Positions 14,901 to 54,016 of a DNA stretch of 54,016 nucleotides are shown here, one piece after another. A program made the translations under genes and the position numbers. Source of the stretch: Macrostomum lignano (taxonomy: Eukaryota); NCBI GenBank assembly GCA_002269645.1, contig NIVC01003284.1:1-54016 (forward strand), read 5' to 3'. Position 1 is the first letter of the stretch. Each line of letters starts with the position of its first letter. The notes under the pieces are model-generated. The model was not told where the DNA came from, ran no database searches, and saw only the letters and a program-made list of their open reading frames with translations.

Positions 14901-17900
14901 ATCGCATGTGCGTCTATGCCAACAATGGCGATGAAGCCGGCCCAGTTTACTTGGCCATCCGCATGCATGCTGGCAGCAGGCGCACCCTCAGATCTCAGCA
15001 GATCACTGTGCCAGAGCGGGGTCAGGTGTTCGAGCATCCAATCACTGTGGAGATTCAATATCCGCACGCTATTAAGCGAGATAATCCTTTGCTGATTATG
15101 CTGCAACGGCGTAAGAAGTATAGAAATTTAGGCTTCAAGACAATGGGCCTAGCGCAGGTGAGAGTTTTATTGTTTAAGTGCCTGTTTTCAGCGCTAAGAA
15201 CTTTCGGTCAAATATCCCCAGACGAGTCTGTTAGTCAAATAGACTCAAATATCCCCAGACGAGTCTGTTAGTCAAATGGACTCAAATATCCCCAGACGAG
15301 TCTGTTAGTCAAATGGACTCAAATATCCCCAGACGAGTCTGTTAGTCAAATGGACTCAAATATCCCCAGACGAGTCTGTTAGTCAAATGGACTCAAATAT
15401 CCCCAGACGATTCTGCTAGTCAAATGGACTCAAATATCCCCAGACGATTCTGCTAGTCAAATGGACTCAAATATCCCCAGACGAGTCTGTTAGTCAAATG
15501 GACTCAAATATCCCCAGACGAGTCTGTTAGTCAAATGGACTCAAATATCCCCAGACGATTCTGCTAGTCAAATGGACTCAAATATCCCCAGACGAGTCTG
15601 TTAGTCAAATGGACTCAAATATCCCCAGACGAGTCTGTTAGTCAAATGGACTCAAATATCCCCAGATGAGTCTGTTAGTCAAATGGACTCAAATATCCCC
15701 AGATGAGTCTGCTAGTCAAATGGACTCAAATATCCTCAGATGAGTCTGTTAGTCAGATGGACTCCAATATCCCCAGATGAGTCTGCTAGTCAAATGGACT
15801 CAAATATCCTCAGATGAGTCTGTTAGTCAGATGGACTCCAATATCCCCAGATGAGTCTGTTAGTCAAATGGAATTAAATATCCTCAGATGAGTCTGTTAG
15901 TTCGTCAAATAGAATTAAATATCCCCAGTTGAGTCTGTTAGTCAAATACTATTTACTGGTAAGTTGGGATTGTTGATTAAGTATCCCTTAATAGGGACGC
16001 ATTGCAGTTCGACAATCTCAATGACTCAACTCAAAATTAATGTAACTCATTCAAGCCTCCAAATCTTGAGCTACTTACAATGTTGCAGGTGAATCTGTCG
16101 GACGTGCTCCAGTGCCGCCTGCTGCAGCACCAGCTCGACCTGCTTCCGGAGTCCAGCAGCAAAGTTGACCAGTCCTCTATGTCCGGCAAGTCCTCCTCTG
16201 CCGCCGCCGCGGCCGCTGCAAACCGCCGCCCTGTCGGGTTTCTCCACGTGGTGCGGCTGGAGACGCTGCCACCGCCGCGCGATCTGGCCGCCTGTAGGAA
16301 GGACTTCGCCGCTGCCGTCGCCGGCGCCGTTGCGTCTGGCCGCTGGACAGATGAGGCCATCAGCGATGAGGACGAGACGGACCATGGCGTGGATGAAGAC
16401 GAGGAGGATGAGAAGATTAAGAAGGACGCTGTTAATAAGGTGATGAAAGATACCAGTTGAATTTGTGTCTGTCAGTTACACCTGGTGTGTGTCAGTTACA
16501 CCTGGTGTGTGTCAGTTACACCTGGTGCCTGTCAGTTACACCTGGTGTGTCAGTTACACCTGGTGTGTGTCAGTTACACCTGGTGTGTGTCAGTTACACC
16601 TGGTGTGTGTCAGTTACACCTGGTGTGTGTCAGTTACACCTGGTGTCTGTCAGTTACACCTGGTGTGTGTCAGTTACACCTGGTGTGTGTCAGTTACACC
16701 TGGTGTCTGTCAGTTACACCTGGTGTGTGTCAGTTACACCTGGTGTGTGTCAGTTACACCTGGTGTCTGTCAGTTACACCTGGTGTCTGTCAGTTACACC
16801 TGGTGTCTGTCAGTTACACCTGGTGTCTGTCAGTTACACCTGGTGTCTGTCAGTTACACCTGGTGTCTGTCAGTTACACCTGGTGTCTGTCAGTTACACC
16901 TGGTGTCTGTCAGTTACACCTGGTGTGTGTCAGTTACACCTGGTGTGTGTCAGTTACACCTGGTGTGTGTCAGTTACACCTGGTGTGTGTCAGTTACACC
17001 TGGTGTGTGTCAGTTACACCTGGTGTGTGTCAGTTACACCTGGTGTGTGTCAGTTACACCTGGTGTGTGTCAGTTACACCTGGTGTGTGTCAGTTACACC
17101 TGGTGTGTGTCAGTTACACCTGGTGTGTGTCAGTTACACCTGGTGCCTGTCAGTTACACCTGGTGTGTGTCAGTTACACCTTGTGTCTGTCAGTTACACC
17201 TGATGCCTGTCAGTTACACCTGGTGTGTGTCAGTTACACCTGGTGTCTGTCAGTTACACCTGATGCCTGTCAGTTACACCTGGTGTCTGTCAGTTACACC
17301 TCGTGAATGTCAGTTACTCCTGGTGCCTGTAAGTTACACCTTGTGTCTGTCAGTTACACCTTGTGTCTGTCAGCTACACCTTGTGTCTGTCAGTTACACC
17401 TTGTGTCTGTCAACTACACCTTGTATCTGTCAGTTACACTTGTGTCTGTCAGCTACACCTTGTGTCTGTCAGCTACACCTTGTGTCTGTCAGCTACACCT
17501 TGTGTCTGTCAGCTACACCTGTGAGCCTATCTAATCGCACCCTAAAAGTGAACTCGTATTGAACTATTTCGCTTCTCATTTCAGCCAAAAGAATGGCGCC
17601 AGAAGTTCAAGCTTTTTATGGACGAAAATTTCTCTACCATATTGAAGCTTAAAAAGCTGAAGGGTGGCCAACAGTTTGAGGTGAGCGGAAAATGATACTG
17701 CAGTTTTTGCATTATTTATGATTTACGATTAGTTAGTTCCCTCATCTACTTAGTAAGTATCTAGGGTAAACGGCGAGAGTAACTTCGAATGTTAAAAAAG
17801 CGCCTCGTCATCTAATAAGTTGCTTCAAAAGAAAAATGAAAGTATTATCTGGTCTAATAGTACATTGCGCAGGGTTTGCAGTTGCTACGCAGGCCAGTCC

Positions 17901-20900
17901 CTGTGTATTTTCGTGCTTGCCTAGATGGCTAAATTGAATTGCCCCTTCCCGCTATCCTGTCGTCACTGGCTAGCAAGCAGAATTTGATAGAACGGAACCA
18001 ACCGCTAGGGTTGGGGGGGATTAAATCTGCGCGCTCTCTTTGAGTCCAGTCTAAGTACCCCTTGTGCTGGCTGGCGGACGGCGCAGGGAGAGGCGGGGAT
18101 ATAGGCCTGTGCTAATGGGAACGCGCCCGAGCTGTACTCTCTGATAGACAAGGAAGGATGCGTGTGCGTGCAACTGACGAGAGACGGGCGGCTGGCTGTG
18201 GCTGTCCGGACTTCTCGGACACGCCCGGAGGCGAGAGAATCCAAGGGCCTGGCTTCCGTCTTTGGCTGCAAGCTTAGCTTATCGGGCACGGGGGTTAAAG
18301 ATACGCATTGAAATATCATAGTTACCGACGTCTTAAACGATGTTTTAAGCTTTTTGTCGGTCTTTTGTCGATACTTTAGGTGTTGATGCTTTAATGTGCG
18401 CAATTATCGATACATTCTCTGACTCTTATATCGACCTGACGCCTTAATCGATTGATTTATTATTATTTTAAGCGATAAAGCTATCGATACTTTAAACGAC
18501 GATTGACACTCATCGACACTAACAGACGCAATTATCGACACTTTAATTAATACATCCATCGACACTCGAATCGATGCCTTTATCGACATATTTATACCCT
18601 CAGACACTTTATAAGTAGCACCTTTTATCGACATGTCAAGTGGCACATTTTTCGACACTACCAGCGACATCTTAATCAAACATTTATCGACACTACAAGC
18701 GACATCTTAATCGAATATTTATCGACACTACAAGCGTCATCTTAATTGAACATTTATCGACACTACAAGCGACATATTAATCGATTATTTATCGACACTA
18801 CAAGCGTCATCTTAATTGAACATTTATCGACACTACAAGCGACATCTTAATCGAACAATTAGCGACACTACAAGCGACATCTTAATCGAATATTTATCGA
18901 CACTATAAGCGACATATTAATCGATTATTTATCGACACTACAAGCGACATCTTAATCAAACATTTATCGACACTACAAGCGACATCTTAATTGAACATTT
19001 ATCGACACTACAAGCGACATCTTAATCGAACAATTAGCGACACTACAAGCGACATCTTAATCGAATATTTATCGACACTATAAGCAACATATTAATCGAT
19101 TATTTATCGACACTACAAGCGACATCTTAATCAAACATTTTTCGACACTACCAGCGACATCTTAATCAAACATTTTTCGACACTACCAGCGACATCTTAA
19201 TCAAACATTTATTGACACTACAAGCGACATCTTAATCGAACATTTATCGACACTACAAGCGACATCTTAATCGAACATTTATCGACACTACAAGCGACAT
19301 CTTAATCAAACATTTATCGACACTACAAGCGACGCTACAAGTGTAATCTTAATCGAACATTTATCGACACTACAAGCGACATATTAATTGAACATTTATC
19401 GACACTACAAGCGACGCTACAAGCGACATCTTAATCGAACATTTATCGACACTACAAGCGACGCTACAAGTGTAATCTTAATCGAACATTTATCGACACT
19501 ACAAGCGACATCTTAATTGAACATTTATCGACACTACAAGCGACATCTTAATCGAACATTTATCGACACTACAAGCGACATCTTAATCGAACATTTATCG
19601 ACACTACAAGCGACATCTTAATCGAACATTTATCGACACTACAAGCGACATCTTAATTGAACATTTATCGACACTACAAGCGACATCTTAATCGAACATT
19701 TATCGACACTACAAGCGACATCTTAATCGAACATTTATCGACACTACAAGCGACATCTTAATCGAACATTTATCGACACTACAAGCGACGTCTTTATAAA
19801 ACTTGTATTAACAATTGAAGCGACAACGAGGCATACGGAGTTGTTTTAACACTCGCTGAAGGATTTTAAGACAGGGAGCTCGGGATGATAATTAATTAAA
19901 GGCAGTGAAAAGATCGCTGCTATTTCTCAGTTGCAGAAATGGCTTTCAGGCGGGTTTTAAAGGCCTTCTGCCCTTTAATTAATTATCCTTATTCCTCTTT
20001 TTCCCTTATCCTATCTTCCTGATCTGCCCCTCTGTTGCAAGCTTCCGCGAACCCGCCTATACAATGCATTCGGTTGCATCCTTTTCGCCTTTGACTCTCT
20101 TCCCTTCGACTCCTCCGCTTTAGTGTTCCGCTCCCGTCTCTCCAGCCTCTGTGATTTTTTTCTTTTGCCCTGCCGTTCCCAACTCAACCCATGCCCGTTT
20201 TCTCTCATCGATTTAGTGCCTTTTTCTTATCCCAGATTCAGGTTTTTCTGTTATACCATAACACTAGAAGCCTTATATTGCTACTACCATTAGATCTAAG
20301 TACGATATGTAGCGTGTTTAATAATTTTTATTATCTTCGATAAAACTAGAAACAAAAATGGAGATAAATTTTCGTATAGTGGATGGATATACTAGTTCAT
20401 CAATTGTTTCTGAACTTTCTGAACTTTCTGAATTCTGAGCTTACACATCGAGTGACACATCTATGAGCACATTGAGTGAAATGTCTATGAGCACATTGAG
20501 TGACACATCTATGAGCACATTGAGTGGCACATCTATGAGCACATTGAGTGAAATATCTATGAGCACATTAAGTGACACATCTATAAGCACATTAAGTGAC
20601 ACATCTATGAGCACATTGAGTGACACATCTATGAGCACATTGAGTGACACATCTATGAGCACATTGAGTGACACATCTATGAGCACATTGAGTGAAATAT
20701 CTATGAGCACATTGAGTGAAATATCTATGAGCACATTGAGTGACACATCTATGAGCACATTGAGTGATACATCTATGAGCACATTGAGTGACACATCTAT
20801 GAGCACATTGAGTGACACATCTATGAGCACATTAAGTGATACATCTATGAGCACATTAAGTGACACATCTATGAGCACATTGAGTGACACATCTATGAGC

Positions 20901-23900
20901 ACATTGAGTGACACATCTATGAGCACATTGAGTGACACATCTATGAGCACATTGAGTGACACATCTATGAGCACATTGAGTGACACATCTATGAGCACAT
21001 TGAGTGACACATCCTCAATGGTTAGTAAGCTGCTAAATGGGCAAGCTGAGCTGAGCGGGAGTTGTCACTGTCTCGGCACAAGCCAAAACTTTCACCCCCC
21101 AATCTGTGCAGCTTGACTACCAGCCCGAGCTGCAAAACGAGTCGCTGTGGAACGACCTCGACGACGCGGAGCCTGACTCCGACTCCAGTCTTGACGACGA
21201 CGACGAGCTCAGCGTACAATCGACGCCCAAGCCGAGCCTGCGGCGCTACTTTGGCTCGCAGGTATCCGACTGCGGCAAGCCGCTGGCTTCAACTGCTGCT
21301 GCACCTGGGCTAAAGCAGCACCAGCAGCAGCATCGCCGGTTGCTTGCTGACGAACCCGACACGATGGACGACCCACCAGCGACGGGTCAGTCGTTGTTGC
21401 AGCCTCCAGCGCCGCTACCGCCGTCGCAGCCGACTCTTTCGCCGACGCCGCTGATGTCGACAACGTCATCACAACAGGCGCCGTCGGTGACGGCCCGCGG
21501 CTCTGCTCTGCTACCGTTTGACAATCCGCTGACAGATGTAAGTTTTGCGTTTGCGAGCTAGGGTCATTGCACAGGCGTAGCCAGTGCGGCATGGCGCCCC
21601 TTGGTGCTGGCGCCCCTTGGTGCTGGCGCCCCTTGGTGCTGGCGCCCCTTGGTGCTGGCGCCCCTTGGTGCTGGCGCCCCTTGGTGCTGGCGCCCCTTGG
21701 TGCTGGCGCCCCTTGGTGCTGGCGCCCCTTGGTGCTGGCGCCCCTTGGTGCTGGCGCCCCTTGATGCTGGCGCCCCTTGGTGCTGGCGCCCCTTGGTGCT
21801 GGCGCCCCTTGGTGCTGGCGCCCCTTGGTGCTGGCGCCCCTTGATGCTGGCGCCCCTTGATGCTGGCGCCCCTTGGTGCTGGCGCCCCTTGGTACTGGCG
21901 CCCCTTGGTGCTGGCGCCCCTTGGTGCTGGCGCCCCTTGGTGCTGGCGCCCCTTGGTGCTGGCGCCCCTTGGTGCTGGCGCCCCTTGGTGCTGGCGCCCC
22001 TTGGTGCTGGCGCCCCTTGGTACTGGCGCCCCTTGGTGCTGGCGCCCCAAGTCTGTGTCTATTTCTGTTAAGTCATCGAACCATATTAGCAATCGATCGT
22101 TTCTGCTTGTACAATATATTTTTTAGTTCAGCTAATGCCATTTTATCTCGTTTTTTTTAATTCTAACGAATTAGCAGTGCTGTCCTCAACAGATATGTTC
22201 AATATCGTAAACTAGAACTAGAGACACTAGAGACAAAGAGTACAAAGCTTAGTCACTTTTACTACTGCTACAAATGGTGCTTACTCGGTTAAAAAAGTGT
22301 CCCTAGAAATTTCCAATCCAGAATCAAAGCGCATCCTGACACAGTTTAGATTAGGACCGAGGACTGCGAGACCAAAGATCCCTAACGAGAATAGGACTAA
22401 CCGAAAGTGCCGCCTGGGGGGGTAGAAAGTGAAGTTCACTTCCTGTTTATTATTTATCATAGACAGGGGGCTGTGTGCACCCTGGTGCACTTTTAGCGAC
22501 ATTGTCACAACTGGCAAGAGGCATTGCTGCCCATTCTGCCGACTCCCCTGAGCAGGCACACACTCACACAGGAGTGCACAGCGGTCCTGACTGTATTTAT
22601 CGTCAGGCATGTACACTTCACTGTGCCTTGGGGTTGTGGCCCCAAGGCCGTTGATTGCACGAGCAGAGCCAAGCCGAGATTCCAATTTAGCCTCAAACTA
22701 ATGTGACTGCACTTGGAATCGAGCCTGGGCCGCTGGCACACCAGAGCGCCGCGATGGACCACTGGGCTACGGCCCTCACTTCCTGTTTAAGTGCAGTTGG
22801 ACTTTTATAGTGCTCCCCGTGATAAATGTGAACAGGAAATCTTGGATAAACAGGTTTGCCCCAGAAAATGTTGCATTGGTCTCCGTTTTTTAAAAAGTAC
22901 ATGCCGTACTTCGTCCACAGGCGCCGCCGCCGCCGCCGCCGCAAAATTTGGCACAACATCAGCCGAGGCGGCTGTCTTGCATCACCCCAACTTCCGCCTT
23001 CGCTGCCGTTAGTTTGCCCAATTGCCCGTCCCGTGTAGATTTTAGAATCGCAACAATTTTTATCGCTAATTGGATTTTTCAAAGAGAAAGAAGATTAGTT
23101 CTTTAAATTTTATGTCGCCGTTGAATTGTTTTTAGACTTTTTGATTGCGTTAATTGCATAGTCTGATTTTATATTTCACTGAAAAAATTAGCAAACACTT
23201 ATGGGATCGTTTCAGGAGCTCAAAACTTCACACCGTCCAAAGGCAGAGCCTTTCATAGCCTCGAATCTTCACCTGCTCGAATCTTCACCTGCTCGAATCT
23301 TCACCTGCTCGAATCTTCACCTGCTCGAATCTTCACAGGCTCGAATCTTCACAGGCTCGAATCTTCACCTGCTGGAATCTTCACCTGCTCGAATCTTCAC
23401 CTGCTCGAATCTTCACCTGCTCGAATCTTCACCTGCTCGAATCTTCACCTTCTCGAATCTTCACCTTCTCGAATCTTCACCTTCTCGAATCTTCACCTTC
23501 TCGAATCTTCACCTGCTCGAATCTTCACCTGCTCGAATCTTCACCTTCTCGAATCTTCACCTGCTCGAATCTTCACAGGCTCGAATATTCACATGCTCAA
23601 ATCTTCACCTGCTCGAATCTTCACAGGCTCGAATCTTCACTTGCTCGAATCTTCACAGGCTCGAATCTTCACCTGCTCGAATCTTCACAGGCTCGAATAT
23701 TCACCTGCTCGAATCTTCACCTGCGCGAATCTTCACAGGCTCGAATCTTCGCCTGCTCAAATCAAAAGCTTACCACCCCGAAAAAGTCTTGCTTTATGTA
23801 GTCAGTTCCGCTAGTTGCCAATTTGAACGAAATTCAATCCTTATGAAGTTTCGATCTTATGAAATTCACTGTCTTCGACAATGTGAAATTTCTAGCTTGT

Positions 23901-26900
23901 TAAAGCACCTAAATTGACAATTTCTTGCCAGAGGTATGAATTTTCACTGACAATTTAATGCTATCGTGGATTGGAAAACAGAAGCAATTCAAGACAAAGA
24001 ATCTCTCCGATGCATCTAATTTTAGGACTTGAAAATACAACAATAAATTAAAAATTCAAACAATTAACTTTTGGTAATAAAATTGTTTACAGATCTAATT
24101 TAGTTAGATCATAAATTTTAACTGTTCCTACTGATGGTCTGAGAAAGTTTTTTATGATTGCAAATAATTAATCAAGGTGTTTTTACTTTAATAAGATAGA
24201 TAATCTGCAAGATTTAATTGCTGTATTAATAATTGACTTTCTGTGTAAATTTTCCTAAATTTTAATAACTTATTTTACTGGATTGCATTGCGTCTCAGTG
24301 TGAAAGCTTTAGACAATAAGTACACGGGGCTCTTTTCTAAATTTCTTTTTTGTCTTTTTAGCCGCGCAAGGAGTGCATCGAGGCCGTCCACCGTCTCCAC
24401 GGCGAACCGCTGCCCGAGAGGCTCTGCATTGTCTGCACCGCTGAGGCTGGCGGCCGGGTGAGTGCTCACTCACCTCACCTGAAATCAACCGTCACCTGTT
24501 CACACACTTTACCTGACACCAATCCTCACCTATTCACCCACCTCACCTGACACCAATCCTCACCTGTTCACCCACCTCATCTGACACCAATCCTCACCTG
24601 CTCACCCACCTCACCTGACACCAATCCTCACCTGTTCACCCACCTCACCTGACACCAATCCTCACCTGTTCACCCACCTCACCTGACACCAACCCTCACC
24701 TGTTCACCCACCTCACCTGACACCAATCCTCACCTGTTCACCCACCTCACCTGACACCAACCCTCACCTGTTCACCCACCTCACCTGACACCAACCCTCA
24801 CCTGTTCACCCACCTCACCTGACACCAACCCTCACCTGTTCACCCACCTCACCTGACACCAATCCTCACCTGTTCACCCACCTCACCTGACACCAACCCT
24901 CACCTATTCACCCACCTCACCTGACACCAATCCTCACCTGTTCACCCACCTCACCTGACACCAATCCTCACCTGTTCACCCACCTCACCTGACACCAACC
25001 CTCACCTGTTCACCCACCTCACCTGACACCAACCCTCACCTGTTCACCCACCTCACCTGACACCAACCCTCACCTATTCACCCACCTCACCTGACACCAA
25101 CCCTCACCTATTCACCTACGTCACCTTACACCCCGACTCAATGAATCCCAAGTTCATTTGCCTCTCTCTACACCCACAAGGCGCTATTGGAAGCGCTGCA
25201 GTCGGAGATGAGGCTGCCCTGCGTGCCTACGGCCTCCCCGGCCGACTGCAGGCACGCCATCGGTCACATGGCTGCTGCGCTGGCGCAGACGCCGAATCCA
25301 GCCGGCCGAGCCGGGGCTCCGCCGCCACCGGCGCTGCACAGAATCTGCCTTCTCGGCTCCGATCAGCACGCCAACGCTGTGCTCCGCGCCTACGTGGATC
25401 ATTTCGGCTCCCGACCGCCTGGCTGGCAGTCCCGAGTTCGATTCCACTACGCCCCGTTGCCAGGCGGGCCGACCGCCTGTGCCCAGCTGTGCCGGCACCT
25501 TGCCGGCTGCGACCCCACCTACGCCAAGCTGTTCCACGCAGACGATTGGCGGGACAGCTCGCCTAGCGAGGCGGCGCGTCGGATCTGGCGCTACCTGACT
25601 GGCGCCTCGGGCTTGCTGGGCCTACAAATTGGCGAGGTCATGCTGGCCACCGGCCTGCGCCACGCCGAGTCCTCTGAAGCCTCTGAAACGGCGGCCCAGC
25701 AGCAGCAGCAGCAGCAACAGGCGCCTGGTTCCGCTTCATCCGCCTCAGCAGCGACGTCCGGGTCTGCGGTAACTGCGACGGCAACTGCGGCGTCGGGCTC
25801 GGCGGTAGCATCTTCGACGGACGGGTCTGCGGGAGTCGGCGGTGTCGCTGTCGGTGCCGCGGCATCCGGCTCGATGGACGACACCGACGTAGTGGGGTTC
25901 GCCTCCTGCCCGTTGGGCGCGCAGACTTTCGTGCCGTTCGTTGTTGGGGTTCGCATCGGCCTGGCGGAACATCCGGACAGCGACGGAGAGCAGCAGCACC
26001 ACCAGCTGCACCATCATCACCATCCGCATCATCACCAGACCTCTCCAGCCGCTGGCCACCTTCACGGCTCCGGCACTCCGCCGCAGAGCCCCAATTTGAA
26101 CGACGGCGGCGGCGGCGGCAGCGGCGGCGGTAGCGGCGGCGGCGAGTTTGTGGACCTCCAGTTGGACTACTGGACTGCGGGCAACGAGCGCAAGACCGCT
26201 CTTAAGCCGGCCTTCCGGGCGTTGTACATCAGTCGGCTGGCGCAGCCAGCTGCTGCGGATGACAAAACCTCTGCCTCTGGAGGCCCCAGCGGTGGCGCCG
26301 GAGCGGGTGGCTCGGTTAGCGCTAGAGGCCTCGTCATGACTGTGGTCAATCGGGAGAAAAAACAGAAAAGTGAGCCCTGACTTATCGCCGCTTCATAGGG
26401 TAATCAGCTGGAGTAACTAAGGCTGCATCGGCGCGGCTAATTCGCGCCTCGTCCCCTGATTCGATTTCGTGCGCGGCCGCATTCGTTTGGGACTTGTGCA
26501 GGAAAAATTGGCCGGGGGATTGCTGACGATTGGAATGTCACCCTTTGCGTGTGTATGAGTGCGTGTCTGCATACAGTATTGGCGCGCTTGTATGTGCTTA
26601 AGACAGGAGTCAGCGGAATTTTCCAGAGATACTTAAAAGCTGCTGACTGTACGAGTAGTATTTTGTGCAAAAGTAAACAGCTGGAGCAACTATGACTTTA
26701 CCTGTGTACTAAAATGCCTCGTCATGTAATTAATTTGCAGTAATGCGCCTCGGCAAGAAAGGCAAGGAGACCGAGGGTAAACGCGAAGTTGTAGAAAATC
26801 TATCTAGGCTAATTTGCACTAGCAAGAGCCAGAGTCATCCCATGAAAGGTAAGACAGAAGTCTCATATGTTAATGAAACCTTTTTCCTATTGCTGTGTCG

Positions 26901-30224: not shown

Positions 30225-31471
30225 ATGTCTGCTATCGCGAGCCACTGCGGCTGTGCGCTGCGTCGTCTCCTGTTTCTAGCGCCGCTTGCTTCGGCGACAG
30301 CGGCGGCTTATCCCGCTGCCTCCGTCTGCCAGCGGCGCGGCTACCCGGGCGGCGTCAAGAAGGTGCCGGATTTGGAGGATCATCCGAAACGGCGCAAGGG
30401 CCGTCACGTTCACCCGATTCCCAACAGCCAATACCGCGGCTTCACTGTTAACGAGGGCTCCAGGGTAAAACCTTTTTTGGGGCCGATTTGTTTTACCTTG
30501 AAGTCTTCTTTGGAATCTTTTGCTCCTCGCTATGGTCCCCTCAGCTGAAACTTATCACGGTCCCTCAGCTGCACCTCATTATGATTCCTCAGCTGCACCT
30601 CATCATGGTCCCTCAGCTGCACCTCATCATGGTCCCTCAGCTGCACCTTATTCTGATCCCTCAGCTGCACGTCAACATGATCCCTCAGCTGCACCTCATC
30701 ATGATCCCTCAGCTGCACCTCATCATGATCCCTTAGCTGCACCTCATCATGGTCCCTCAGCTGCACCTTATTCTGATCCCTCAGCTGCACCTCATTATGA
30801 TTCCTCAGCTGCACCTCATCATGGTCCCTCCCTCAGCTGCACCTTATTCTGATCCCTCAGCTGCACCTCATTATGATTCCTCAGCTGCACCTCATCATGG
30901 TCCCTCAGCTGCACCTCATCATGGTCCCTCAGCTGCACCTTATTCTGATCCCTCAGCTGCACCTCATCATGGTCCCTCAGCTGCACCTCATCATGATACC
31001 TCAGCTACACCTCAGCATGATCCCTCAGCTGCACCTCAGCATGATCCCTCAGCTGCACCAAATCATGATCCTTCAGCTGCACCTCATCATAGTCCCTCAG
31101 CTGCACCTCATCATGATCCCTCAGGTGCACCCACCTCATCATGGTCCCTCGGCCGAACCGCATAGTACCTAGCTTCCCCTCAACTCACCGCTCCACCACG
31201 CCAGGTGCGAACAAACGACGTCGTGTTGCGCCAAATCGGGCTTCAATTTTATCCTGGCGAGAATGTACGCTTGAACAGGGACAACTGGGACCTCGTGGCC
31301 GAGTCCAACGGCCGTCTGTTGCTGACCACCGAGCTGCTGGATCCGCTGCCGGACAGTCCGCTCTACGAGCTTGTGAAATCTGGCCAGGCATTTGAAAAAG
31401 TTTTTGTGCACGTGGTACGCATGCCGGAAGACGAGCTCAAGGCCGAGTACCAACTGGTGTCGCTTGTCTGA
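30225..31471 (+). CDS. MRPL27: Mitochondrial ribosomal protein L27 (bL27m), 168 aa; join(30225-30464,31205-31471)
   Basis: Arg/Ala-rich presequence-like N-terminus and a phase-0 GT-AG intron. The L27 core reads RGFTVNEGSRVRTNDVVLRQIGLQFYPGENV, and the C-terminus KVFVHVV...YQLVSLV resembles that of animal MRPL27. Confidence 0.88.
30535..31150. repeat. 24-bp minisatellite (CCTCAGCTGCACCTCATCATGGTC), about 25 copies, MRPL27 intron
   Basis: Period of 24; explains the (PQLHLIM)n and (PSAAPHH)n ORFs. Confidence 0.95.
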
Positions 31472-32402: not shown

Positions 32403-42324
<9,922 letters not shown>

Positions 42325-43102: not shown

Positions 43103-46040
43103 GAAGTTGGGGTGACGCTTGGTCGCCATGATCTCAGCTGTCACTTGAAGCATTGAAGATAGCGCCCCTCAGATAGGTCCCAAAAGTGCTTCTTACGACA
43201 GGTCCCGAGCAGTCGTAGAGTTAAGGTCAACCTTACGAAAGACCATAGACATACTAACGTTTCGAGAAACTACATATAATTAATAACGGTCTGTATGTGC
43301 AGGACTGTCAATGTTAAAGGTTCTGACTGACACCTCCCCCTTCTGTAGTTGTTGTTAAACGATCGGCTAAATTAAAATATGCGATTCGATCGGGTCCGTA
43401 AAAATTGTAAAAAAATCCGAAGAAAGGCAAAACGTTGCAGTTTATCGAATATGGATAGATTTTTTATCGCACAGTTTATTCTTTTAGTGTAATAGAGTAG
43501 TAATTATGTGTAGTTATAGTAGATCATACTAGTAAAAATATAGGTTGATTCTGTATAGAAATATAGCGATTCTTCGACTCTATATAAGAATCAATTGAGA
43601 GAAAAATGTTAAAAAGAAAAAGTAAAAAAGTTTAAATTTTCGATTTTGACAGCAGTTTCGTTTATAAAGAGATGCTTTAATTTTTGTCGTTTAAATGTAT
43701 ATAATTTGTCATAAAAAGCATGTCACATTAAAAACAAAGGGGGGGGGGTTTATAGCTCAAAGTTTAGCTACTTCTAGTAGTAAGATTCTAGAAAGATAAC
43801 TTAATCACTGGCAAAGTCAGAATTTGTGTTATTTGTTTACTGATAAAACACAAATTCCTCAGGACTTTATTGGGTGATACTACGGGCTCGTATATTCAGT
43901 AATATCCCGTAAAAAATTTTTTGTGTTTGATTTATGAGATGAAACGTGCCCTTTTCGGGAGCTATTTTCATAAATTGTATAATTATACACAAATATCCCC
44001 TTCAAAGTGTATGTTTTATCTTCCACTAGTACACAATTTACTTCGAAGAGCAATCAAACTTATCACAATCAAGTTTCTTTTACTTTCGACCGAATTCTCG
44101 CTAAACTTGTTGAGTGCACCTCGGGAAAGGCGCAAAACCAAAACGAAACAAAATATTAGAAATTTCAAGATAAAAAAACTGAAAACTTCTTCCTACCTCC
44201 TAATTTACCCCAGGCCAAGAAGCGTCCCCAGAGTCACTTGCATCCCGCCGGAGTTGTTGCAGGTAACACAGGTAAAATACGAGAGAAAAGTGTACTGTGA
44301 CGACTGTAACGCGACGAGATGTCACGGTAAAAGTCGCCTAAAGAGTCACTTTAAGGCGTTTGATTTTCTAAGACACTGATGAAACGAATCCCAGGTGACG
44401 CAAGTGACTCTAGGACACTTTTATAAATAAATCTGGAACCGTAGAGTCGCATTTCAGGAGTTCTAGAGTTGCTAAACTGCGTAGTGTAGATCTAGACTAC
44501 TAAACTCTAATTGGCCTACTTTTGAGTTAGTAGAGAGTTAATCGCTAACGCAGCGACTTTTCCGTGTCTCGAATATAAAATAGAAAACGATCACGTGACG
44601 CGCGTTTTGTACTCCACACTCGCCTCTTCCGTTGCATTTGAGTCTTAGAATTTACAAGGCAAACTCTGGCCCGTGGGCCTCTCTATCAGGCCCTCACGGA
44701 TCAGGTCCTTCGAAACTTTACAATATAGCCATCCCGCGCCCGCTCAATTGGAATTTATCTTCATTAACTCCTTTTTGTTTTCTCTCCCCTCCTCTAGCCC
44801 GCAGTCATGCATGCGCTAGGTTCTCTTTTGGCCCTTGATCAGGTAATAGAGTTTGTTAACCCCTGTGCTAAAGTCATAAGAGGGTTGTTTGCAATGAGTT
44901 CTTAGCAAATAAAGTCATGTTAACGTTTTCAACGAGTGCTCATGGTGTGCAGAAAGAGCCAGCCACAATAGATATGTCTACCTTCCCATCAGATTCGGTG
45001 TTGCCTCCATCCGTTCCTGAAACTTGCTTAGCTGAAGCAGCTGCATAGCTGGAGCCGCCGCCACCTGGACTGCCCGATGGGCCGCCGGAGCCGCCGCAGT
45101 AGCCACCGCCGCCGCCGCCTCCGGCCTTATTTGGTCCACCAGTTGTTCGGCCTCCACCGCCTCCACCACCGTAGCCACCAAAGCCGCCTCCTGATCCGCC
45201 ATCACCTCCTGCCAAGTTACTTCCAACGGTGCCACACTGGCTGCCCCCGGGTGGAGTTCCAGGTGATTGCCATCCTGCACCGCCGGCGCCGCAGTTATTT
45301 CCGGACGGGTTGCTTCCCGCGTTTCCGGAGCAGCCGCCGGTCGAACTGTTTCCAGGGCTGCCTGTAGCCGAGCTGACGTCTCCTCCGCCTCCTCCTCCTC
45401 CGGCCGCCAGCAGCAGGACGGGACTGCCGCCACTCGTGTAGACGAAAGTGCCGCCTCCTCCGCCGCCGCCATTGCCATCGTTTCCGGGTTTTCCGACAAC
45501 AATAGTCAACGTCTGAGAGCTGTTTAGGATAAAGTGGGCAATTTTTATAGCCCCGTTGCCACCGGCTGCACTTCCGGAACCTCCTTTGGCACCACGCGCT
45601 TCGAACCGATAGCAGGCATTGTCCACAGGGGGCGTGTAGTTCACCGGTGTTCCATGTTGTTTTGAACCCGAGGTTGGCACTGAAAATTTAAATTGACGAT
45701 TCGAAGTTATGCAATAAATATAAATTCATTGGACAACAAAATTAGATGGACGCTGCACTAAAAATACATGTACTTAGTCTTTTCTCTGTAGCATTTTCAG
45801 AGAAAATGCAGCTTGATAAACTTTATAAACTTGATAAACAGACCCTTGATTCATTTGAAATTCGAAATTTCAATTTCAGTATGTAGGAAATTTCTAGCAA
45901 AAAATCCTGAAAAACTGAACATTGAGCTCTGCGGGCGCCCCTGTCTCCCCTGCTGGCGGGGATGTCATCCAAGAGGAGCCACAAGTTGAGCTGCCTGTCT
46001 TTCGTCCAGTTTCGGATAGCTCGTACCTCTTTTTTATTTA
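43103..46040. repeat. Segmental duplication copy A (about 2.9 kb), paralogous to 51176-54016
   Basis: Collinear matching blocks, e.g. 43103 vs 51176, 43275 vs 51620, 43730 vs 52060, 44590 vs 52500, 44940-45680 vs 52847-53588, 45690-46040 vs 53590-54010. Confidence 0.9.
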
Positions 46041-47316
46041 GCTTTAAGTAAGATAGCAATTTTTGTTGGGGGTGATTGAGGGAGTCTCTATGGACGAGCT
46101 CAGAACCAGTGGTTTAAAAACATTTCATCATGGAAAAGTTTAAGCCGTATGACTGCGAGACCATCCTTAAGCTTTTTCTGCGAGTATTTCCAGCTGAAGG
46201 CTCGGTTTAAATATAAACTTTTGCTTCTTAATACTTCCGTATGCTAAAATTCTTTTTATGCCTACCTGTTACTACCATTGGAGCAGGAGTTGTAGTGGTT
46301 GTCGTAGTGGTCGTAGTCGGAGTCGTGGTGGTCGTAGTCGGAGTCGTGGTGGTCGTAGTTGGAGTCGTGGTGGTTGTAGTAGTCGGAGTTGTGGTGGTTG
46401 TAGTAGTCGGAGTCGTGGTGGTCGTAGTTGGAGTCGTGGTGGTTGTAGTAGTCGGAGTCGTGGTGGTGGTCGTAGTCGGAGTCGTGGTTGTAGTCGGAGT
46501 CGTGGTGGTTGTAGTAGTCGGAGTCGTGGTGGTTGTAGTCGGAGTCGTAGTGGTCGTAGTCGGAGTCGTGGTGGTCGTAGTCGGAGTCGTGGTGGTGGTC
46601 GTAGTCGGAGTTGTAGTGGTCGTAGTCGGAGTCATGGTGGTCGTAGTCGGAGTCGTGGTGGTGGTCGTAGTCGGAGTTGTAGTGGTCGTAGTCGGAGTCG
46701 TAGTGGTCGTAGTCGGAGTCGTAGTGGTCGTAGTCGGAGTTGTAGTGGTCGTAGTAGGAGTCGTAGTGGTCGTAGTCGGAGTCGTGGTGGTGGTCGTAGT
46801 CGGAGTCGTGGTGGTCGTAGTTGGAGTCGTGGTGGTTGTAGTAGTCGGAGTCGTGGTGGTGGTCGGAGTCGGAGTCGTAGTGGTCGCCGTCGGGGTCGTG
46901 GTGGTGGTCGTAGTCGGAGTTGTAGTGGTCGGAGTCGCAGTCGGAGTCGAGGTCGTCAGAATTGAACTCGTAGTCGGAGTCACTGACGCAGTCTCACAGT
47001 CTGCTGCGCCTCGCAGCACCTGCGTGTTGCAGGCCGGTCCGCCGCTGTGTTGCCAGAAAAGCAGCAGGTCGCAGCTGTTTCCAAGAATGCATGACCTGTT
47101 GCTAGGCGAGTACTCATACACTGAGCACAGAGTCGTGTTGCTCGCGCATTCGACAGCGCACACTCGAGGATCGGCAACGCCAAGCAGTTTGCGCGGACTC
47201 TCAGCTGCAGTGGCAGCATTGTGGCACAGGTCCGGCCTCTTGTCGAAGACAAAAGATGTACCGTCGGCGAATGAAATCAGCACTGCCAAGGTTATGGCAA
47301 CTTCGTGAAGTGTCAT
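44940..47316 (-). CDS. Secreted protein: signal peptide + PAN/apple-like domain + Thr/Pro mucin stalk + ALK/LTK-type glycine-rich domain, about 596 aa; complement(join(44940-45679,46266-47316))
   Basis: The donor CAG|GTAGGC after 46266 (phase 1) and the acceptor TTTTCAG|TG at 45680/45679 join the two ORFs in frame (1791 nt). There is a hydrophobic N-terminus and the apple-like Cys pattern CAVEC...CSVYEY...CIL, followed by about 230 aa of (PTTTTT)n. GRD motifs: YRFEARGAKGG, FILNSSQTLTIVVGKPG, GGGGGGGTFVY, LLLAAGGGGG, GGGGSSY, DGKVDI. No transmembrane segment. Confidence 0.8.
46290..46960 (-). repeat. Coding minisatellite (18-24 bp units) encoding the PT(n) mucin stalk
   Basis: ACGACCACCACGACTCCGACT-type units; every length variant is a multiple of 3. 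Confidence 0.9.
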
Positions 47317-48120
47317 TCCAAGACGCTGACAGCAGGGCTTGGTTATCGAGGTAGATTGGTAGATGCTTCTAAGCCAGGAAAGTCGCTAAGCCAGTGAGTA
47401 ATTGCAGCTCTAAATATAGTGTCTCAGCTGCATTTTCCTGTTGGCTGGCTGGGCTATCCAGCGAATAGAATTTGTTGTCCTCGTCTCCATGGAAACCATC
47501 CCAAGACAGTAGCTAATTAGCTTCGGAATATAGAGAGAAACTTTGCCTGTCATGCGGCAGTTGAGAGTAAATTGGTGGCATTATAAGCATTCTCGATGAG
47601 ATGATGGCAAGTTGCAGGATGCTGCGGCCAAACGGGCCTCAACTCTGCATCAGTAATCAACTCATTCTGACTCAAGCCGATTTTGGGCGAACAAAGGGAT
47701 TTTTTAACTTTTTTTTACTCTGGTTGTCAGAAAGCTTTTAATGAGCTTACTAAGTATTGCTGCTGAGTAGCTTTTGCAGTTGTGGCAAGCTCAAAATAGC
47801 TTTGTGCTGACTTGTCTTGAGCCTCGACAAGGAAGTGTCTGGATCCGTTTTTAATCTCTATTCGATCTTGATTTCAAATTTTTCGATATAAGTCAACAAT
47901 ATAAAAATGGCCTCGAGATTGTTTCATGAATAAAGTTTTCATTGCACTTCAACATGGAGGAGGAGGTGCGGGGCTCGTGTGGTGTTGGCAGAAGTGCATG
48001 TAGGCTAAGGGTTCTTTGAGTGGAAAGATGCCAATGAAGAAGAGTATGAAGTTTTGTGTTTTTGCTGCTTATCGTTTTGAAGTTGCAGGTACAGGTTTAC
48101 AGGTAATGCATACATGTTGA

Positions 48121-48420: not shown

Positions 48421-48965
48421 CATGGAAAATTTTGTCCTATCCTTATAGCGTTTTTCAAGGATTTATCCTTATTATCCTTATAGTGCCACAACCCCTACCA
48501 TCAACTGTAGCTAAGGCTTCATCTTTTACAGTAAGATTTTCTAGCATTTTATTCGATCGAAAACAGTTAATTATAACTATTTGTAATGTGAATAAATTTG
48601 TGCTACAAATGCCAAACGTTTCCAAGCTGAGAAAATTTGAATGAATCTAATTTTTTGTTATAAAATAGCCACACTCCAGGCTTGGCCCCGCACCATAGGG
48701 ACAAACGAGAGGCTCCTGATGGTAGCTCTTCTCCTATTTAGTTAGAAGAGAACCAGACTCCGTCTGGAGCCTTTCATGCTGTCGTCCACTCCAACTCTCT
48801 CGCTGTTTCATTTGCCGTTTAAATTATTAATGAAATCGCATAGCATGGTTGGCTCACGCTTGCTTCCAGTTAAAACCGGCTTTAACAAACTCTTTTTTAA
48901 CTGCCTGAGAAAACCTGGCAAAGTGTGGATGGCTGCTCGGAGCCTGCGCTGTATCAAGCTGATTC

Positions 48966-50785
48966 GAGAAGAGAGGTGAGAAGAGAGGTGAAGAGAGGAG
49001 ATAAGAGGAGAGGAGAGGATAAGAGAGGTGAAGAGAGGAGAAGAGAGGGGAGAAGAGGAGAGGTAAGGGGAGAAAGAGGTGAGGAGAGGAGAGGAGAGGA
49101 GAGGTGAAGTGAGGAGAGGAGAGGGGAGGAGAGGGGAGAAGAGGAGAGGAGAGGAGAAGAGAGGTGAAGAGAGGAGAGGAGAGGGGAGAAGAGGAGAGGT
49201 AAGGGGAGAAAAGAGGTGAAGAGAGGAGAGGAGAGGAGAGGTGAAGATAGGGGAGACGAGGAGAGGAGAGGGGAGAAGAGGAGAAGAGAGATAGGGAGAG
49301 GAGAGGTGAGGGGAGAAGAGAGGTGAGGAGAGGAGAAGAGAGGTGAGGAGAAGAGAGGTGAAGAGAGGAGATAAGAGGAGAGGAGAGGAGAGGTGAAGAG
49401 AGGAGAGGTGAGGAGAGGAGAGGTAAGGAGAGGAGAGGGGAGAAGAGGAGAGGAGAGGAGAGAAGAGAGATGTGGAGAGGAGAGGTGAGGGGAGAAGAGA
49501 GGTGAGGAGAGGAGAAGAGAGGTGAGGAGAGGAGAGGGGAGGAGAAGAGAGGTGAGGAGAGGAGAAGAGAGGTGAGGAGAGGAGAGGAGAGGAGAGGTGA
49601 GGAGAGGGGAGGTGAGGAGAGGAGAGGAGAGGAGAGGGGAGGAGAAGAGAGGTGAGGAGAGGAGAGATGAAGAGAGGAGAGGAGAAGAGAGGTGAGGAGA
49701 GGAGAGAAGAGGAGAGGAGAGGAGAGGGGAGAGAAGAGAGGTGAGGAGAGGAGAAGAGAGGTGAAGAGAGGAGATACGAGGAAATGAGAGGAGAGGTGAA
49801 GAGAGGAGATAAAAGGAGAGGAGAGGAGAGGTGAAGAGAGGAGAGGTGAGGAGAGCAGAGGTAAGGAGAGGAGAGGGGAGAAGAGGAGAGGAGAGGAGAG
49901 AAGAGAGATGTGGAGAGGAGAGGTGAGGGGATGGTATCTCCAACTGCCGCCAATCTCGTGCGGCAGTGCCCAATCCGTCCCTCAAGCTGCGGAGAATCCT
50001 TTTGAACGAAAATCGAAAATATATCCGCGCTCTCACTATGGCCTTCACAGGTCACGGTTGCTTTGCCAGGCACTGTTTCCTCCGAAGTGCCCGCCGGAGC
50101 GAACTCTGCCCTTTCTGCAACCTCGAGAACGAAGACGCCAAGCACTTCGTCTGCTACTGCCCGGCCTTCAACCGAGACCGGCTCAACCACCTCGGGCCCA
50201 ACCCGTCCCTAGACGACGTTTGTCGGCCCGAGAACATCCCACGGCTCATCCGGTTCCTCCGGGCCACCAAGCGAGCCTCCGTCTTCCCCACCGAAGACAA
50301 CGCTGCAGACAGGACCGGCAGACCTCCCTGACCGGCCCCGCGCCCTAGCCTATGCTGGTCTTTCAGGGATTAGCGGAATGGGCGACGCTCGCCTCCCCAC
50401 TGCGTCTTCGGACCGCCCTGCAGCTAAGTCAAGTAAGTCAGAGGTGAGGGGAGAAGAGAGGTGAGGAGAGGGGAAGAGAGGTAAAAAGAGGTGAAGAGAG
50501 GAGAGGAGAAGAGAGGAGAGGAGAAGAGAGGTGAGGAGAGGAGAGATGAAGAGAGGAGAGGAGAAGAGAGGTGAGGAGAGGAGAAGAGAGGTGAGGAGAG
50601 GAGAGGTGAGGAGAGGAGAGGAGAGGGGAGGAGAAGAGAGGTGAAGAGAGGAGAGGTGAAGAGAGGTGAGGAGAGATGAAGAGAGGAGAGGAGAAGAGAG
50701 GTGAGGAGAGGAGAGGTGAGGAGAGGAGAGGAGAGGGGAGGAGAGTAGAGGGGAGGAGAAGAGAGGTGAAGAGAGGAGAGGTGAG
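48966..50785. repeat. Polypurine (GAGAG/GAGGA/GTGA) low-complexity tract, interrupted by a LINE fragment
   Basis: Directly visible; source of the (SPLLS)n ORFs. Confidence 0.95.
49931..50440 (+). mobile_element. 5'-truncated non-LTR retrotransposon (I/R1/LOA-like group) 3' end with TSD
   Basis: ORF 49966-50331 carries the ORF2 C-terminal CCHC motif (FTGHGCF...CPFC..ENEDAKHFVCYCPAF). Short TAAGTCAAGTAAGTCA tail; direct repeat GAGGTGAGGGG at 49920-49930 and 50441-50451. Confidence 0.85.
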
Positions 50786-51175: not shown

Positions 51176-54016
51176 GGAAGTTGGGTTGACGCTTGGTCGC
51201 CATGATCTTAGCTGTCACTTGCAGCATTAAAGAATCGTCCCTCAGATTGATCCCGAGAGCAGTCGTAGAGTTAGGATCATTAACCTTACGAAAGACGTAC
51301 CATAGACATGCGAACATTTCGAGAAACTGCATCTTTCGTAAAGTTGCGATCACTCTTACGCATAGTCAAACTGTGTGGCCATCACAACTTACGTCTATGG
51401 TCCATTGTATCATGCGTAATCTTAGCGATATAAGGTCGGGAGAGTGCTGGCCTGAAGAATAGAAAGTAGTCTGCAGGGCCGCACTGGCGCGCTTGTCTGT
51501 TTTCAGGAGTCAGCGATATGGGTAGAATTGCATGCCCCAGCTAGCGCTGGAATTGTGTGACGATGTCACCGCCGAAGGCGTTGCTCCGCCAAGGTGCCCG
51601 CAACCCTCGTGCAATTGATATAATTAATGACGGTCTGTATGTGCAGGACTGTTAATGTTAAAGGTTCTGACTGACACCTCCCCCCTTCTGTAGTTGTTGT
51701 TAAACGATCGGCTAAACTAAAATACCGTATGCGATACGATCGGGTCCGCAAAAAATTTTTAAAAAATCCGAAGAAAGGCAAAACGGTTCAGTTTATCGAA
51801 TATGGATAGATTTTTTCGGTGTCACACAGTTTATTCATTTAGTGTCATTTAGTAGTAACTATGTAGTTTAGTAGGATCATACTAGTAAAAATATAGCTTG
51901 ATTCTGTATAGAAAATATAGCGATATAAGAATCGATTGAGAGAAAAGGTAAAAACAGTTTAAATTTTCGATTTTGACAGCAGTTTTGTTTATAAAAAGTT
52001 GCTTTAATTTTTGTCGTTTAAATTTATACAGAAAAGAAAGTTTGTTAGTCAGAAAACATGTCACATTAAAAACATAGGGGAATTATAGCTCAAAGTTGAG
52101 CTACTTCTAGTAGTAAGATTCTAGAAAAATAACTTATTTTTCGATGGCTGAACTTGATTTCTCGCTAAACTTGTTGAGTGCACCTCGGGAAAAGGACAAA
52201 TTAGCGAAAAGAAACAAAATATTGGAAATTTCAAGATTAAAACTTAAAACTTTCTACCTCCTAATTTAGTTTTACATGAAATCTGCATATGATATTGAAC
52301 TCCAAATCTCAAGAGCTACAGCTGCACGACTGCTGAGATTAGATTCTACCTGACCCGATGAAAACGGTACCCAGGCCAAGGTCCCCAGAGTCACGCGTCA
52401 CGCAAAAACCGGTAAAAAGGGTTAATAATAGGCAAAAAGTTAGTAGAAAGTTAAGCGCTAACGCAACGACTCTTACGTGACTCTTCTACGAATCTACAAC
52501 GATCACGTGACGCACGTTTTTTGTACTCCACAATCGCCTCTCCGTTGCATTTGAGTTGTTAAAATTTACAAGAGTCACCTCAGCGTTGCTAGAGCAGGTA
52601 GGGGTCGGCAGACTCCCGCCCATGGGTCACATGAATTCCGCAAAGCCTCCTAAACTTTACAATATAGCCATCCCACTATTCTGTTTTCTCCCCCCTTCTC
52701 TGGCCCGCAGTCATGCGCTTAGGTTCTCTTGGTCCTTGAGGTAAAAAGAGTTTGCCAAACCCTGTGCTAAAGTCATAAGAGGGTTGCTTGCAATGAGTTC
52801 TTGGTGAATAAAGTCATGTTAACGTTTTCAACCGGTGCTCACGGTGTACAGACGGAGCTAGCCACGATAGATATGTCTAGCTTCCCATCAGATTCGGTGT
52901 TGCTCCATCCGATCCTGAAACTTGCTTGGCTGAAGAAGCTGCATAGCTGGAGCCGCCGCCACCCGGATTGTCTTCTGCCCCACCGGAGCCGCCGCAGTAG
53001 CCACCGCCGCCGCCGCCTCCAGCTTTATTATTTCCATTTGTTCGGCCTCCACCGCCTCCCCCACCGTAGCCACCAAAGCCGCCTCCTGATCCGCCATCAC
53101 CTCCTGCCAAATTGCTTCCAACTGAGCCACAATGGTTGCCCCCTGGTGAAGTTCCAGGTGATTGCCATCCGGCACCGCCGGCGCCACAGTTGTCTCCGGA
53201 CGGGTTGCTTCCCGCGTTTTGATTGGCCAATCCGGAGCAGCCGCCGGTCGAACTGATTCCAGGGCTGCCTGTAGCCGAGTTGACGTCTGCTCCACCGCCT
53301 CCTCCTCCGGCCGCCAGCAGCAGGACGGGACTGCCGCCACTCGTGTAGACAAAAGTGCGCCTCCTCCGCCGCCGCCATTGCCATTGTTTCCGGGTTTTCC
53401 GACAACAATAGTCAACGTCTGAGAGCTGGTCAAGACAAAGTGGGCAATTTTTATAGCCCCGTTGCCACCGGCTGCGCTTCCGCCGGAACCTCCTTTGGCG
53501 CCACGCGCTTCGAACCGATAGCAGGCATTGTCCACAGGGGGCGTGTAGTTCACCGGTGTTCCATGTTGTTTTGAACCGAGGTTGGCACTGAAAATTGAAA
53601 TTGACGATTCGAAGTTATGCACTAAATATAAATTCATTGGACAACAAAATTAGATGGACGCTGCACTAAAAAATGCATGTACTGTAGTCTCCTGTGCAGC
53701 ATTTTCAGAAACAATGTAGCTTGATAAACTTTTGTGTGCGCCTCGGACACAACAGACCCTAATTGATTCATTTGAAATTCGAAATTTCAATTTCAATATG
53801 TAGGAAATTTCTTGCTAAAAAATCCTGAAAAACTGAAGATTGAAAGTACGATGTTTGAGTCTTTGAAATATGCAAATGGCTTCATGAGCTCTGCGGGCGC
53901 CGCTGTCTCCCCTGCTGGCGGATGTCACATCCAAGAGGAGCCACAAGTTAAGCTGCCTGTCCTTTGTCCAGCTCGATATCTCTTTTTTATTTAGCTTTAA
54001 CTAAGAGAGCAATTTT
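51176..54016. repeat. Segmental duplication copy B (runs off the right edge of the window)
   Basis: Collinear with 43103-46040; contains an extra segment at about 51330-51615. Confidence 0.9.
52847..53587 (-). pseudogene. Paralogous ALK/LTK-type glycine-rich-domain exon with three 1-nt deletions (pseudogene or consensus errors)
   Basis: Same splice acceptor as copy A (53588-53589). One C is missing at each of about 53577, 53358 and 52903 relative to copy A. The other indels are in frame, e.g. the 12-nt LANQ insertion. Confidence 0.7.

Follow-up and report, generated by a model that had tools for sequence, protein, structure and literature searches.

What is a glycine-rich TG domain (TNF-like plus Gly-rich), a fold hardly discussed outside its ligand-binding role in the cancer-relevant ALK/LTK receptors, doing at the end of a protein without a kinase? 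The question is raised by a locus on the minus strand of contig NIVC01003284.1 (assembly GCA_002269645.1) of the flatworm Macrostomum lignano, of which positions 1 to 54,016 were analysed (54,016 nucleotides, nt; hereafter the window). The original prediction for this DNA had read a Thr-rich and a Gly-rich open reading frame (ORF) as the two exons of a single gene. We conclude that the locus is an intact two-exon gene of M. lignano or a very close relative, and that its product is a 'stalked' member of a Macrostomum-expanded family composed of a signal peptide, a PAN domain and a glycine-rich domain (GRD). The product runs from a signal-peptide-like start through an eight-cysteine PAN/apple-like domain and a Pro/Thr stalk of about 230 amino acids (aa) to the GRD and the stop codon. 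As for its function, we lean, by a modest measure and taking the proposal as a whole, towards a secreted bivalent glycoprotein that would bind or cross-link in an extracellular layer.

Results

The ORF scan placed the Thr-rich frame at 47316..46228 and the Gly-rich frame at 45680..44940, both on the minus strand, with the nearest in-frame stop upstream of the ATG 72 nt away, at 47388. The donor CAG/GTAGGC (GT at 46265-46264) and the acceptor TTTTCAG/TG (AG at 45681-45680) delimit a GT-AG intron of 586 nt. Exon 1 contributes 1051 coding nt, so that the intron is in phase 1, and the spliced coding sequence (CDS) of 1791 nt yields 596 aa and a stop. The exons are 57-61% GC, against 38% for the intron and 42.5% for the window as a whole.

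The junction can be read in a deposited protein. The best database match to the gene is A0A1I8GWL7 of M. lignano (P0001 in our set), auto-named 'Loricrin', which is a frame-broken model of a near-identical locus (about 97% identical over its in-frame part, by our own count). The model covers the last part of the PAN domain, a short stalk translated out of frame (DYDS...) and the first part of the GRD. Its peptide NSANLGFKTTWN is obtained by translating nt 1046-1081 of the window gene's spliced mRNA in frame 2; it spans the junction at 1051/1052 and occurs in no frame of the unspliced window DNA. A0A1I8GWL7 uses exactly the splice junction of the window gene. In addition, the paralog PAA61162.1 (P0028), the one for which the intron at the PAN/GRD boundary was checked, has two coding exons in GCA_002269645.1, separated by a 744-nt phase-1 intron at the equivalent position. 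The splice acceptor of the window gene is kept in a tandem second copy, and the ratio of nonsynonymous to synonymous substitution rates (dN/dS) between the two GRD exons, in the proposed frame and over 238 codons, is 0.31, which indicates purifying selection on the GRD exon. These observations bear out the claim that the Thr-rich and Gly-rich frames are joined in frame by this intron, and we hold the two-exon model to be correct with high confidence. No exact record of the exon-2 ORF product was found in protein databases, and the window gene seems to be missing from them except as the frame-broken A0A1I8GWL7. At 47411-47418 of the minus strand, approximately 95-100 nt 5' of the ATG, there is a TATA-like TATATTTA, a putative and possible core promoter element.

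Between them, the translation, Tandem Repeats Finder (TRF), the profile searches and the structure models bear out the predicted anatomy of signal-peptide-like start, apple-like domain, Pro/Thr (PT) stalk and GRD (Table 1). Residue counts in the 596 aa include 216 Thr, 89 Gly and 54 Pro, and nearly all of the Thr fall inside the stalk. The signal-peptide-like segment contains the protein's peak of hydrophobicity over 15 residues (Kyte-Doolittle 1.92), carries a helix at residues 3-15 in the AlphaFold2 (AF2) model, and has hydrophobic, signal-peptide-like counterparts at the equivalent place in the paralogs described below. The stalk is encoded by an array with a 21-nt (7-aa) period, 29.2 copies and 82% matches at 46301-46943 (TRF). 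At the A0A1I8GWL7 locus only about 45 residues lead from the PAN domain to the junction, against about 240 in the window gene, which reflects either repeat-number variation or repeat collapse in an older assembly. The stop codon lies 8 aa past the last GRD strand, and this C-terminus (a Cys, then a stop a few residues past the last strand) is kept in the paralogs P0025, P0028 and P0038. The absence of a transmembrane segment and of a kinase, also predicted, held up: Kyte-Doolittle means over 19 residues peak at 1.23 beyond the signal peptide, the kinase catalytic-loop motif is absent in every frame of the 54-kb window, and no catalytic or signalling domain can be recognised in the product.

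Table 1. Features of the PAN-GRD locus and of its tandem copy, in window coordinates
Feature	Position	Strand	Basis or remark
Exon 1, coding part	46266..47316	minus	ATG at 47316; signal peptide, PAN/apple-like domain and PT stalk; ends in phase 1
Intron, phase-1 GT-AG, 586 nt	45680..46265	minus	
Exon 2, coding part	44940..45679	minus	Includes stop TGA at 44942-44940
Signal-peptide-like N-terminus, aa 1-19, MTLHEVAITLAVLISFADG	47260..47316	minus	Inferred from hydrophobicity, model helix and paralogs
PAN/apple-like 8-Cys domain, aa ~24-110	46987..47247	minus	Pfam PAN_1, paralog identity, Foldseek
Mucin-like Pro/Thr stalk, aa ~113-343, PTTTTTT/PTTTTTTT repeats	46288..46980	minus	TRF and translation
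ALK/LTK-type glycine-rich (TG) domain, aa ~359-590	44961..45656	minus	Profile, AF2, Foldseek
GRD exon of the tandem second copy	52839..53587	minus	Acceptor intact; exon 1 beyond the window end

The C-terminal domain had been called PF12810-like, a call that stood as regards its family and did not stand as regards its Pfam score. On the window protein, Pfam PF12810 (ALK_LTK_GRD) reaches 8.7 bits (E 2.1), below the gathering cut-off of 24.5, so that the HMMER check proposed with the original prediction formally fails; elsewhere it gives 23.0-24.9 bits for the paralogs and 36-41 bits for M. lignano fragments of other GRD paralogs. The low corrected score can be explained by the very Gly-rich composition, which depresses it. 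A profile of 21 relatives from which the query was excluded gives the window protein 85 bits (77 bits for the domain) over aa 334-590, and the invariant Gly blocks align between the window GRD and its relatives. In a phmmer search of the PDB only ALK ectodomains were matched, collinearly, at E 1.4e-3 and 21 bits, and a 22-row family profile that includes the query retrieved ALK, LTK and SCD-2 of Caenorhabditis elegans from the PDB at E 9e-34 to 5e-20, with ALK/LTK chains at E 1e-33 to 1e-29. The AF2 model of the GRD has a predicted local distance difference test (pLDDT) score of 76.9 and a predicted TM-score of 0.81; it shows strands at both ends and, at its residues 94-218, neither helix nor strand by DSSP. 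All 19 Foldseek matches in the PDB at E <= 1e-3 are ALK/LTK TG domains, with query-normalised TM-scores of 0.50-0.60. Because phmmer, the profiles, the AF2 model and Foldseek support it despite the sub-cut-off Pfam score, the domain is filed here as a divergent member of the GRD/TG family. The polyglycine-II honeycomb for which AlphaFold had been proposed as a check would fit the long GRD stretch free of DSSP helix and strand in the predicted structure.

The ALK/LTK TG domain (PDB 7N00, 7LS0, 7NX0 and others) and the window GRD have collinear conserved motifs and the same predicted fold, with approximately 20-23% identity in the structure alignment to ALK. Unlike the ALK/LTK receptors, the window protein has no EGF-like domain, transmembrane segment or kinase, and unlike that of ALK its GRD has neither the helical insert before the first Gly run nor the N-terminal hairpin. 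This hairpin segment of about 30 aa (FT.xG..G..GP...), present in ALK and in most family members, is absent from the window GRD and from its closest paralogs; the conserved 'Y.IEA.GA.GG' block comes about 20 aa into exon 2. The ALK TG domain binds ALKAL cytokines.

The N-terminal Cys domain is best read as PAN, on borderline scores. The PAN core C-x3-C-x6-C-x2-Y-x-Y...C-x-L occurs as VCAVECASNTTLCSVYEYSPSNRSCIL at aa 52-78, and its cysteines are kept in the paralogs, which UniProt labels 'Apple domain-containing'. Pfam PAN_1 (PF00024, cut-off 21.4) reaches 23.4 bits when the N-terminus is scored by itself but drops to 20.1 bits, short of the cut-off, for the full-length protein, and its match covers only profile positions 14-51 of 76. 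With the AF2 model of the region (pLDDT 67), Foldseek put the HGF N-domain, SML-2, plasminogen, MIC4 and the factor XI apple domain on top (best E 0.058, non-significant), and a PAN profile run against PDB sequences put plasminogen and MIC4 on top (E 0.06-0.2, non-significant). SML-2 of Sarcocystis and MIC4 of Toxoplasma are PAN lectins whose PAN head binds glycan or protein, and the similarity of the window PAN domain to them is borderline. Searches of 5.8 billion proteins with the PAN region only, as a single sequence and as a 4-sequence profile, returned no matches, a weak negative because even the members of the profile were not returned.

The closest relatives of the window protein are three M. 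lignano proteins, PAA57358.1 (Mlig028980g1; P0025), PAA61162.1/PAA91998.1 (Mlig019850; P0028) and A0A1I8IMG2 (P0038), with a GRD identity of approximately 49-52%. Each of them has a hydrophobic signal-peptide-like segment, the same 8-Cys domain, the GRD, and the terminal Cys and stop, the model of P0038 being N-terminally extended. In the N-terminal domain, identity to the window protein is 34-43% for P0028 and P0038 and 22% for P0025. For P0025, no one- or two-intron GT-AG model reproduces the protein, and tblastn shows three coding blocks. The paralogs differ from the window gene in being annotated, whereas the latter is not on record, and in joining the two domains by a linker of only about 20-30 aa instead of a PT stalk. 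The fragments P0001 and P0031 contain DYD-type strings, which are the out-of-frame reading of PT repeats, so that the stalk is probably present in more than one M. lignano paralog. The family comprises at least eight clusters at 50% identity in M. lignano, including a second subfamily (P0008, P0013, P0134, P0143, P0068 and others), known only from fragments and chimeric models, in which a different PAN-like motif (e.g., CLLSC..C..VSL...C.L) is followed by a GRD that retains part of the N-terminal segment (SSGRNGSIQ).

Several of these records carry names that suggest receptors. P0068 and P0071, records that combine a PAN-like motif with a GRD under the name 'protein kinase' or 'receptor tyrosine kinase', were considered as receptor forms and rejected, no kinase domain being found in them at E <= 0.01; P0071 is fused to IFT140, and both are treated as chimeric old models. 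The names 'receptor protein-tyrosine kinase' or 'Loricrin' were also given to M. lignano P0001, P0008, P0013, P0031, P0143 and P0178-P0181 and to P0182 of the coral Porites. Because no kinase domain or motif was found in these auto-named GRD fragments, the names are probably misannotations.

An exhaustive HMMER search gave 506 clusters at E <= 1e-3, and the kinase catalytic-loop motif was found in none of the 180 relatives retrieved at that point. PF12810 was matched in 52 of 97 shorter representatives, where its partners are bacterial surface modules such as PEP-CTERM, type IX secretion system (T9SS) tails, PKD and Ig. The best-scoring relatives outside Macrostomum are non-kinase surface proteins, many of them bacterial, with 75-77 bits against 21 for ALK. 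In these bacterial and other non-kinase proteins (PF12810/PF21722), the GRD is an extracellular C-terminal or repeated module, as in the window protein; the bacterial ones differ in being prokaryotic surface-anchored giants with neither PAN nor mucin parts.

The same pairing of PAN and GRD without a kinase is found in CAH3016673.1 of Porites evermanni, modelled as PAN-GRD-PAN-fn2-GRD, with PAN_1 (E 1e-13), fn2 and two GRDs. At its locus (CALNXI010000045.1, 2001-7898), exon 1 encodes a signal peptide and PAN and ends in phase 1; a 778-nt intron follows, and then exon 2 with the entire GRD, so that the coral gene shares the phase-1 exon plan of the window gene. Read through, exon 2 meets a stop directly after ...GDGKVDIKLIK (the window protein ends in ...SDGKVDISIVAGSFCTP), and the next coding block has an internal Met followed by a hydrophobic stretch. 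Because the read-through GRD exon stops after the domain, the 841-aa NCBI model looks like two fused tandem genes, one encoding signal peptide-PAN and GRD and the other signal peptide-PAN, fn2 and GRD. Unlike that of the window protein, the coral PAN domains are clear Pfam matches; the coral GRD also keeps the N-terminal hairpin, no PT stalk is present, and one of the two units has fn2 between PAN and GRD. The PAN domains of coral and flatworm resemble each other at the core motif only, and no homology could be demonstrated outside it. A PF12810 match of about 270 aa (P0004), considered as a stand-alone GRD protein, is an ORF-level call of the GRD exon of a Porites PAN-GRD gene, and P0006 and P0024 (about 270 aa) may be calls of the same kind.

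The window holds a tandem second copy of the 3' half of the gene, with the GRD exon and 3' flank. The block 51177-54016 duplicates 43103-46063 in four blocks of 74-85% identity, the main one of 1.6 kb at 82%, and the second GRD exon is about 90% identical to that of the window gene. It shows three 1-bp deletions (near 53578, 53359 and 52904), together with in-frame insertions of 3 nt and 12 nt and an in-frame deletion of 3 nt, and no single frame gives an intact GRD; the copy is either a young pseudogene or an assembly error.

Elsewhere in the window, on the plus strand, exons of a PACS-1-like (phosphofurin acidic cluster sorting) gene lie at 14849-15271 and 25187-26380, with C2_PACS_N and Pacs-1 domains, and coding blocks of a mitochondrial ATP-synthase subunit b gene lie at 38380-38859 and 41929-42324. 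Between the latter two, at 39732-40829 on the same strand, is an intact 365-aa DDE_3/helix-turn-helix (HTH) transposase ORF, probably Tc1/mariner-like and inside an ATP-synthase b intron; its product is not on record in protein databases. Minisatellites occupy 758-1903, 3540-4103, 16457-17562, 20441-21116, 21511-22092, 23201-23917, 30749-31165, 40983-41855 and 48808-50190; these arrays yield long, repetitive and spurious ORFs in several frames and look like non-coding tandem repeats.

Discussion

What such a protein does can be approached through its parts. PAN/apple domains bind glycans or proteins, PT repeats of the stalk type are O-glycosylated and extended, and the TG domain of ALK/LTK is a rigid binding platform based on polyglycine II. 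By analogy with these modules, we reasonably infer two binding heads on a rigid glycosylated rod. The protein would be secreted, with a densely O-glycosylated stalk which, at about 0.25 nm per residue, would separate the two globular heads by several tens of nm. Like other PAN/apple lectins, the PAN head may bind a glycan or a protein, while a second, rigid surface for binding would be provided by the TG head; mucus, apical matrix or a gland secretion could be the site of action. Extracellular use of the GRD is seen elsewhere, with PEP-CTERM, T9SS tails, PKD and Ig modules in other proteins and with PAN and fn2 in the coral. A comparable layout is that of LET-653 of C. elegans, in which PAN domains are reportedly joined through a mucin-like linker to a C-terminal matrix domain; that domain is said to be ZP, whereas in the window protein the C-terminal module is a GRD.

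Several observations weigh against the proposal of a secreted bivalent glycoprotein. Support for PAN is borderline (20.1-23.4 bits, Foldseek E >= 0.058, model pLDDT 67), the GRD scores far below the PF12810 gathering cut-off, and the n-region of the signal-peptide-like start carries no positive charge. We know of no ligand for any non-kinase GRD. Finally, given the frame-broken neighbour and the frame-shifted A0A1I8GWL7 model, the window gene could belong to a decaying cluster.

An alternative role, that of a secreted pattern-recognition or defence lectin, would have a rapidly duplicating PAN-GRD family bind microbial glycans with heads presented on the stalk. The expanded and divergent M. lignano family, with its eight or more clusters, the tandem duplication with decay, and the PAN/apple lectin folds among the Foldseek matches would all suit such a role; the dN/dS of 0.31 over the GRD exon, however, speaks of constraint and not of diversifying selection, and we regard this role as unlikely.

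Decay may also have reached the window gene itself, which would then be a non-functional or unexpressed member of the array whose ORFs are open only through recent origin. The three 1-bp deletions of the tandem copy, the frame shift through the stalk in the A0A1I8GWL7 model of the near-identical locus, and the lack of an exact record of the exon-2 ORF product are what this explanation would lead one to expect. However, the CDS of 1791 nt is intact, including approximately 650 nt of repeats, the splice sites are canonical, the GC content of the exons is well above that of the intron, and the stop position is shared with annotated paralogs; together with the dN/dS of 0.31, these features make a dead gene quite improbable.

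A further alternative concerns the Gly-rich head, which could be a structural or material element, a polyglycine-II lattice that interacts with a surface, ice or mineral, or that self-assembles, and not a specific binder. In a phage adhesin and in the antifreeze proteins of springtails, polyglycine-II bundles present flat faces for interaction (PMC12227593), and the modelled GRD region, free of DSSP helix and strand, would fit such a lattice. However, what the fold search matches is specifically the TG domain of ALK/LTK, a domain that has a TNF-like sandwich in it, and two-layer bundles of the antifreeze type are not among the listed fold matches, so that a purely structural head also appears very doubtful.

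The weakest alternative, raised by the original prediction, is that of a soluble decoy or modulator of an ALK-type cytokine (ALKAL/Jeb/HEN-1-like), whose free TG head would capture the ligand and keep it from a flatworm ALK receptor; the shared predicted fold with the ALK/LTK ligand-binding TG domain and the lack of a transmembrane segment and kinase would allow it, but the ALK alignment is only about 20-23% identical and misses the N-terminal hairpin segment of about 30 aa, the nearest relatives outside Macrostomum are non-kinase and largely bacterial proteins (75-77 bits, against 21 for ALK), GRD proteins that are not receptors number in the hundreds (506 clusters), and no ALK ligand or receptor was seen in this analysis, so that we consider it extremely unlikely.

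The original prediction had also supposed the architecture to be undescribed. Kinase-less PAN-GRD proteins already have database entries in M. lignano (PAA57358.1, PAA61162.1 and A0A1I8IMG2) and in a coral (CAH3016673.1), and the architecture is thus in the databases for two phyla. Our literature search turned up no publication on these proteins and nothing relevant on PF12810, on Macrostomum apple or glycine-rich proteins, or on the paralog identifiers. The PAN-GRD combination is therefore deposited yet undescribed, and what is new at this locus is the mucin stalk that separates PAN from GRD.

The finding bears on no long-standing open question, and we infer the function. The locus does correct the database names 'receptor protein-tyrosine kinase' and 'Loricrin' on kinase-less fragments. 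Together with the flatworm paralogs and the coral gene, it presents the TG fold as the C-terminal head of kinase-less, PAN-paired proteins that are predicted to be secreted. A bolder and rather unlikely extension would derive the flatworm and coral genes, with their common plan of signal peptide-PAN, phase-1 intron and GRD-stop, from a single family of soluble TG proteins, ancient within Metazoa and either a sister or an ancestor of the ALK ligand-binding module. If so, the free TG head would bind a specific protein partner, and the linker between PAN and GRD would be an insertion hot spot that can hold nothing, fn2 or a mucin rod. Macrostomum is amenable to RNA interference (RNAi), in situ hybridisation and transgenesis, and its PAN-GRD proteins would be tractable models for what the TG fold binds outside receptor signalling.

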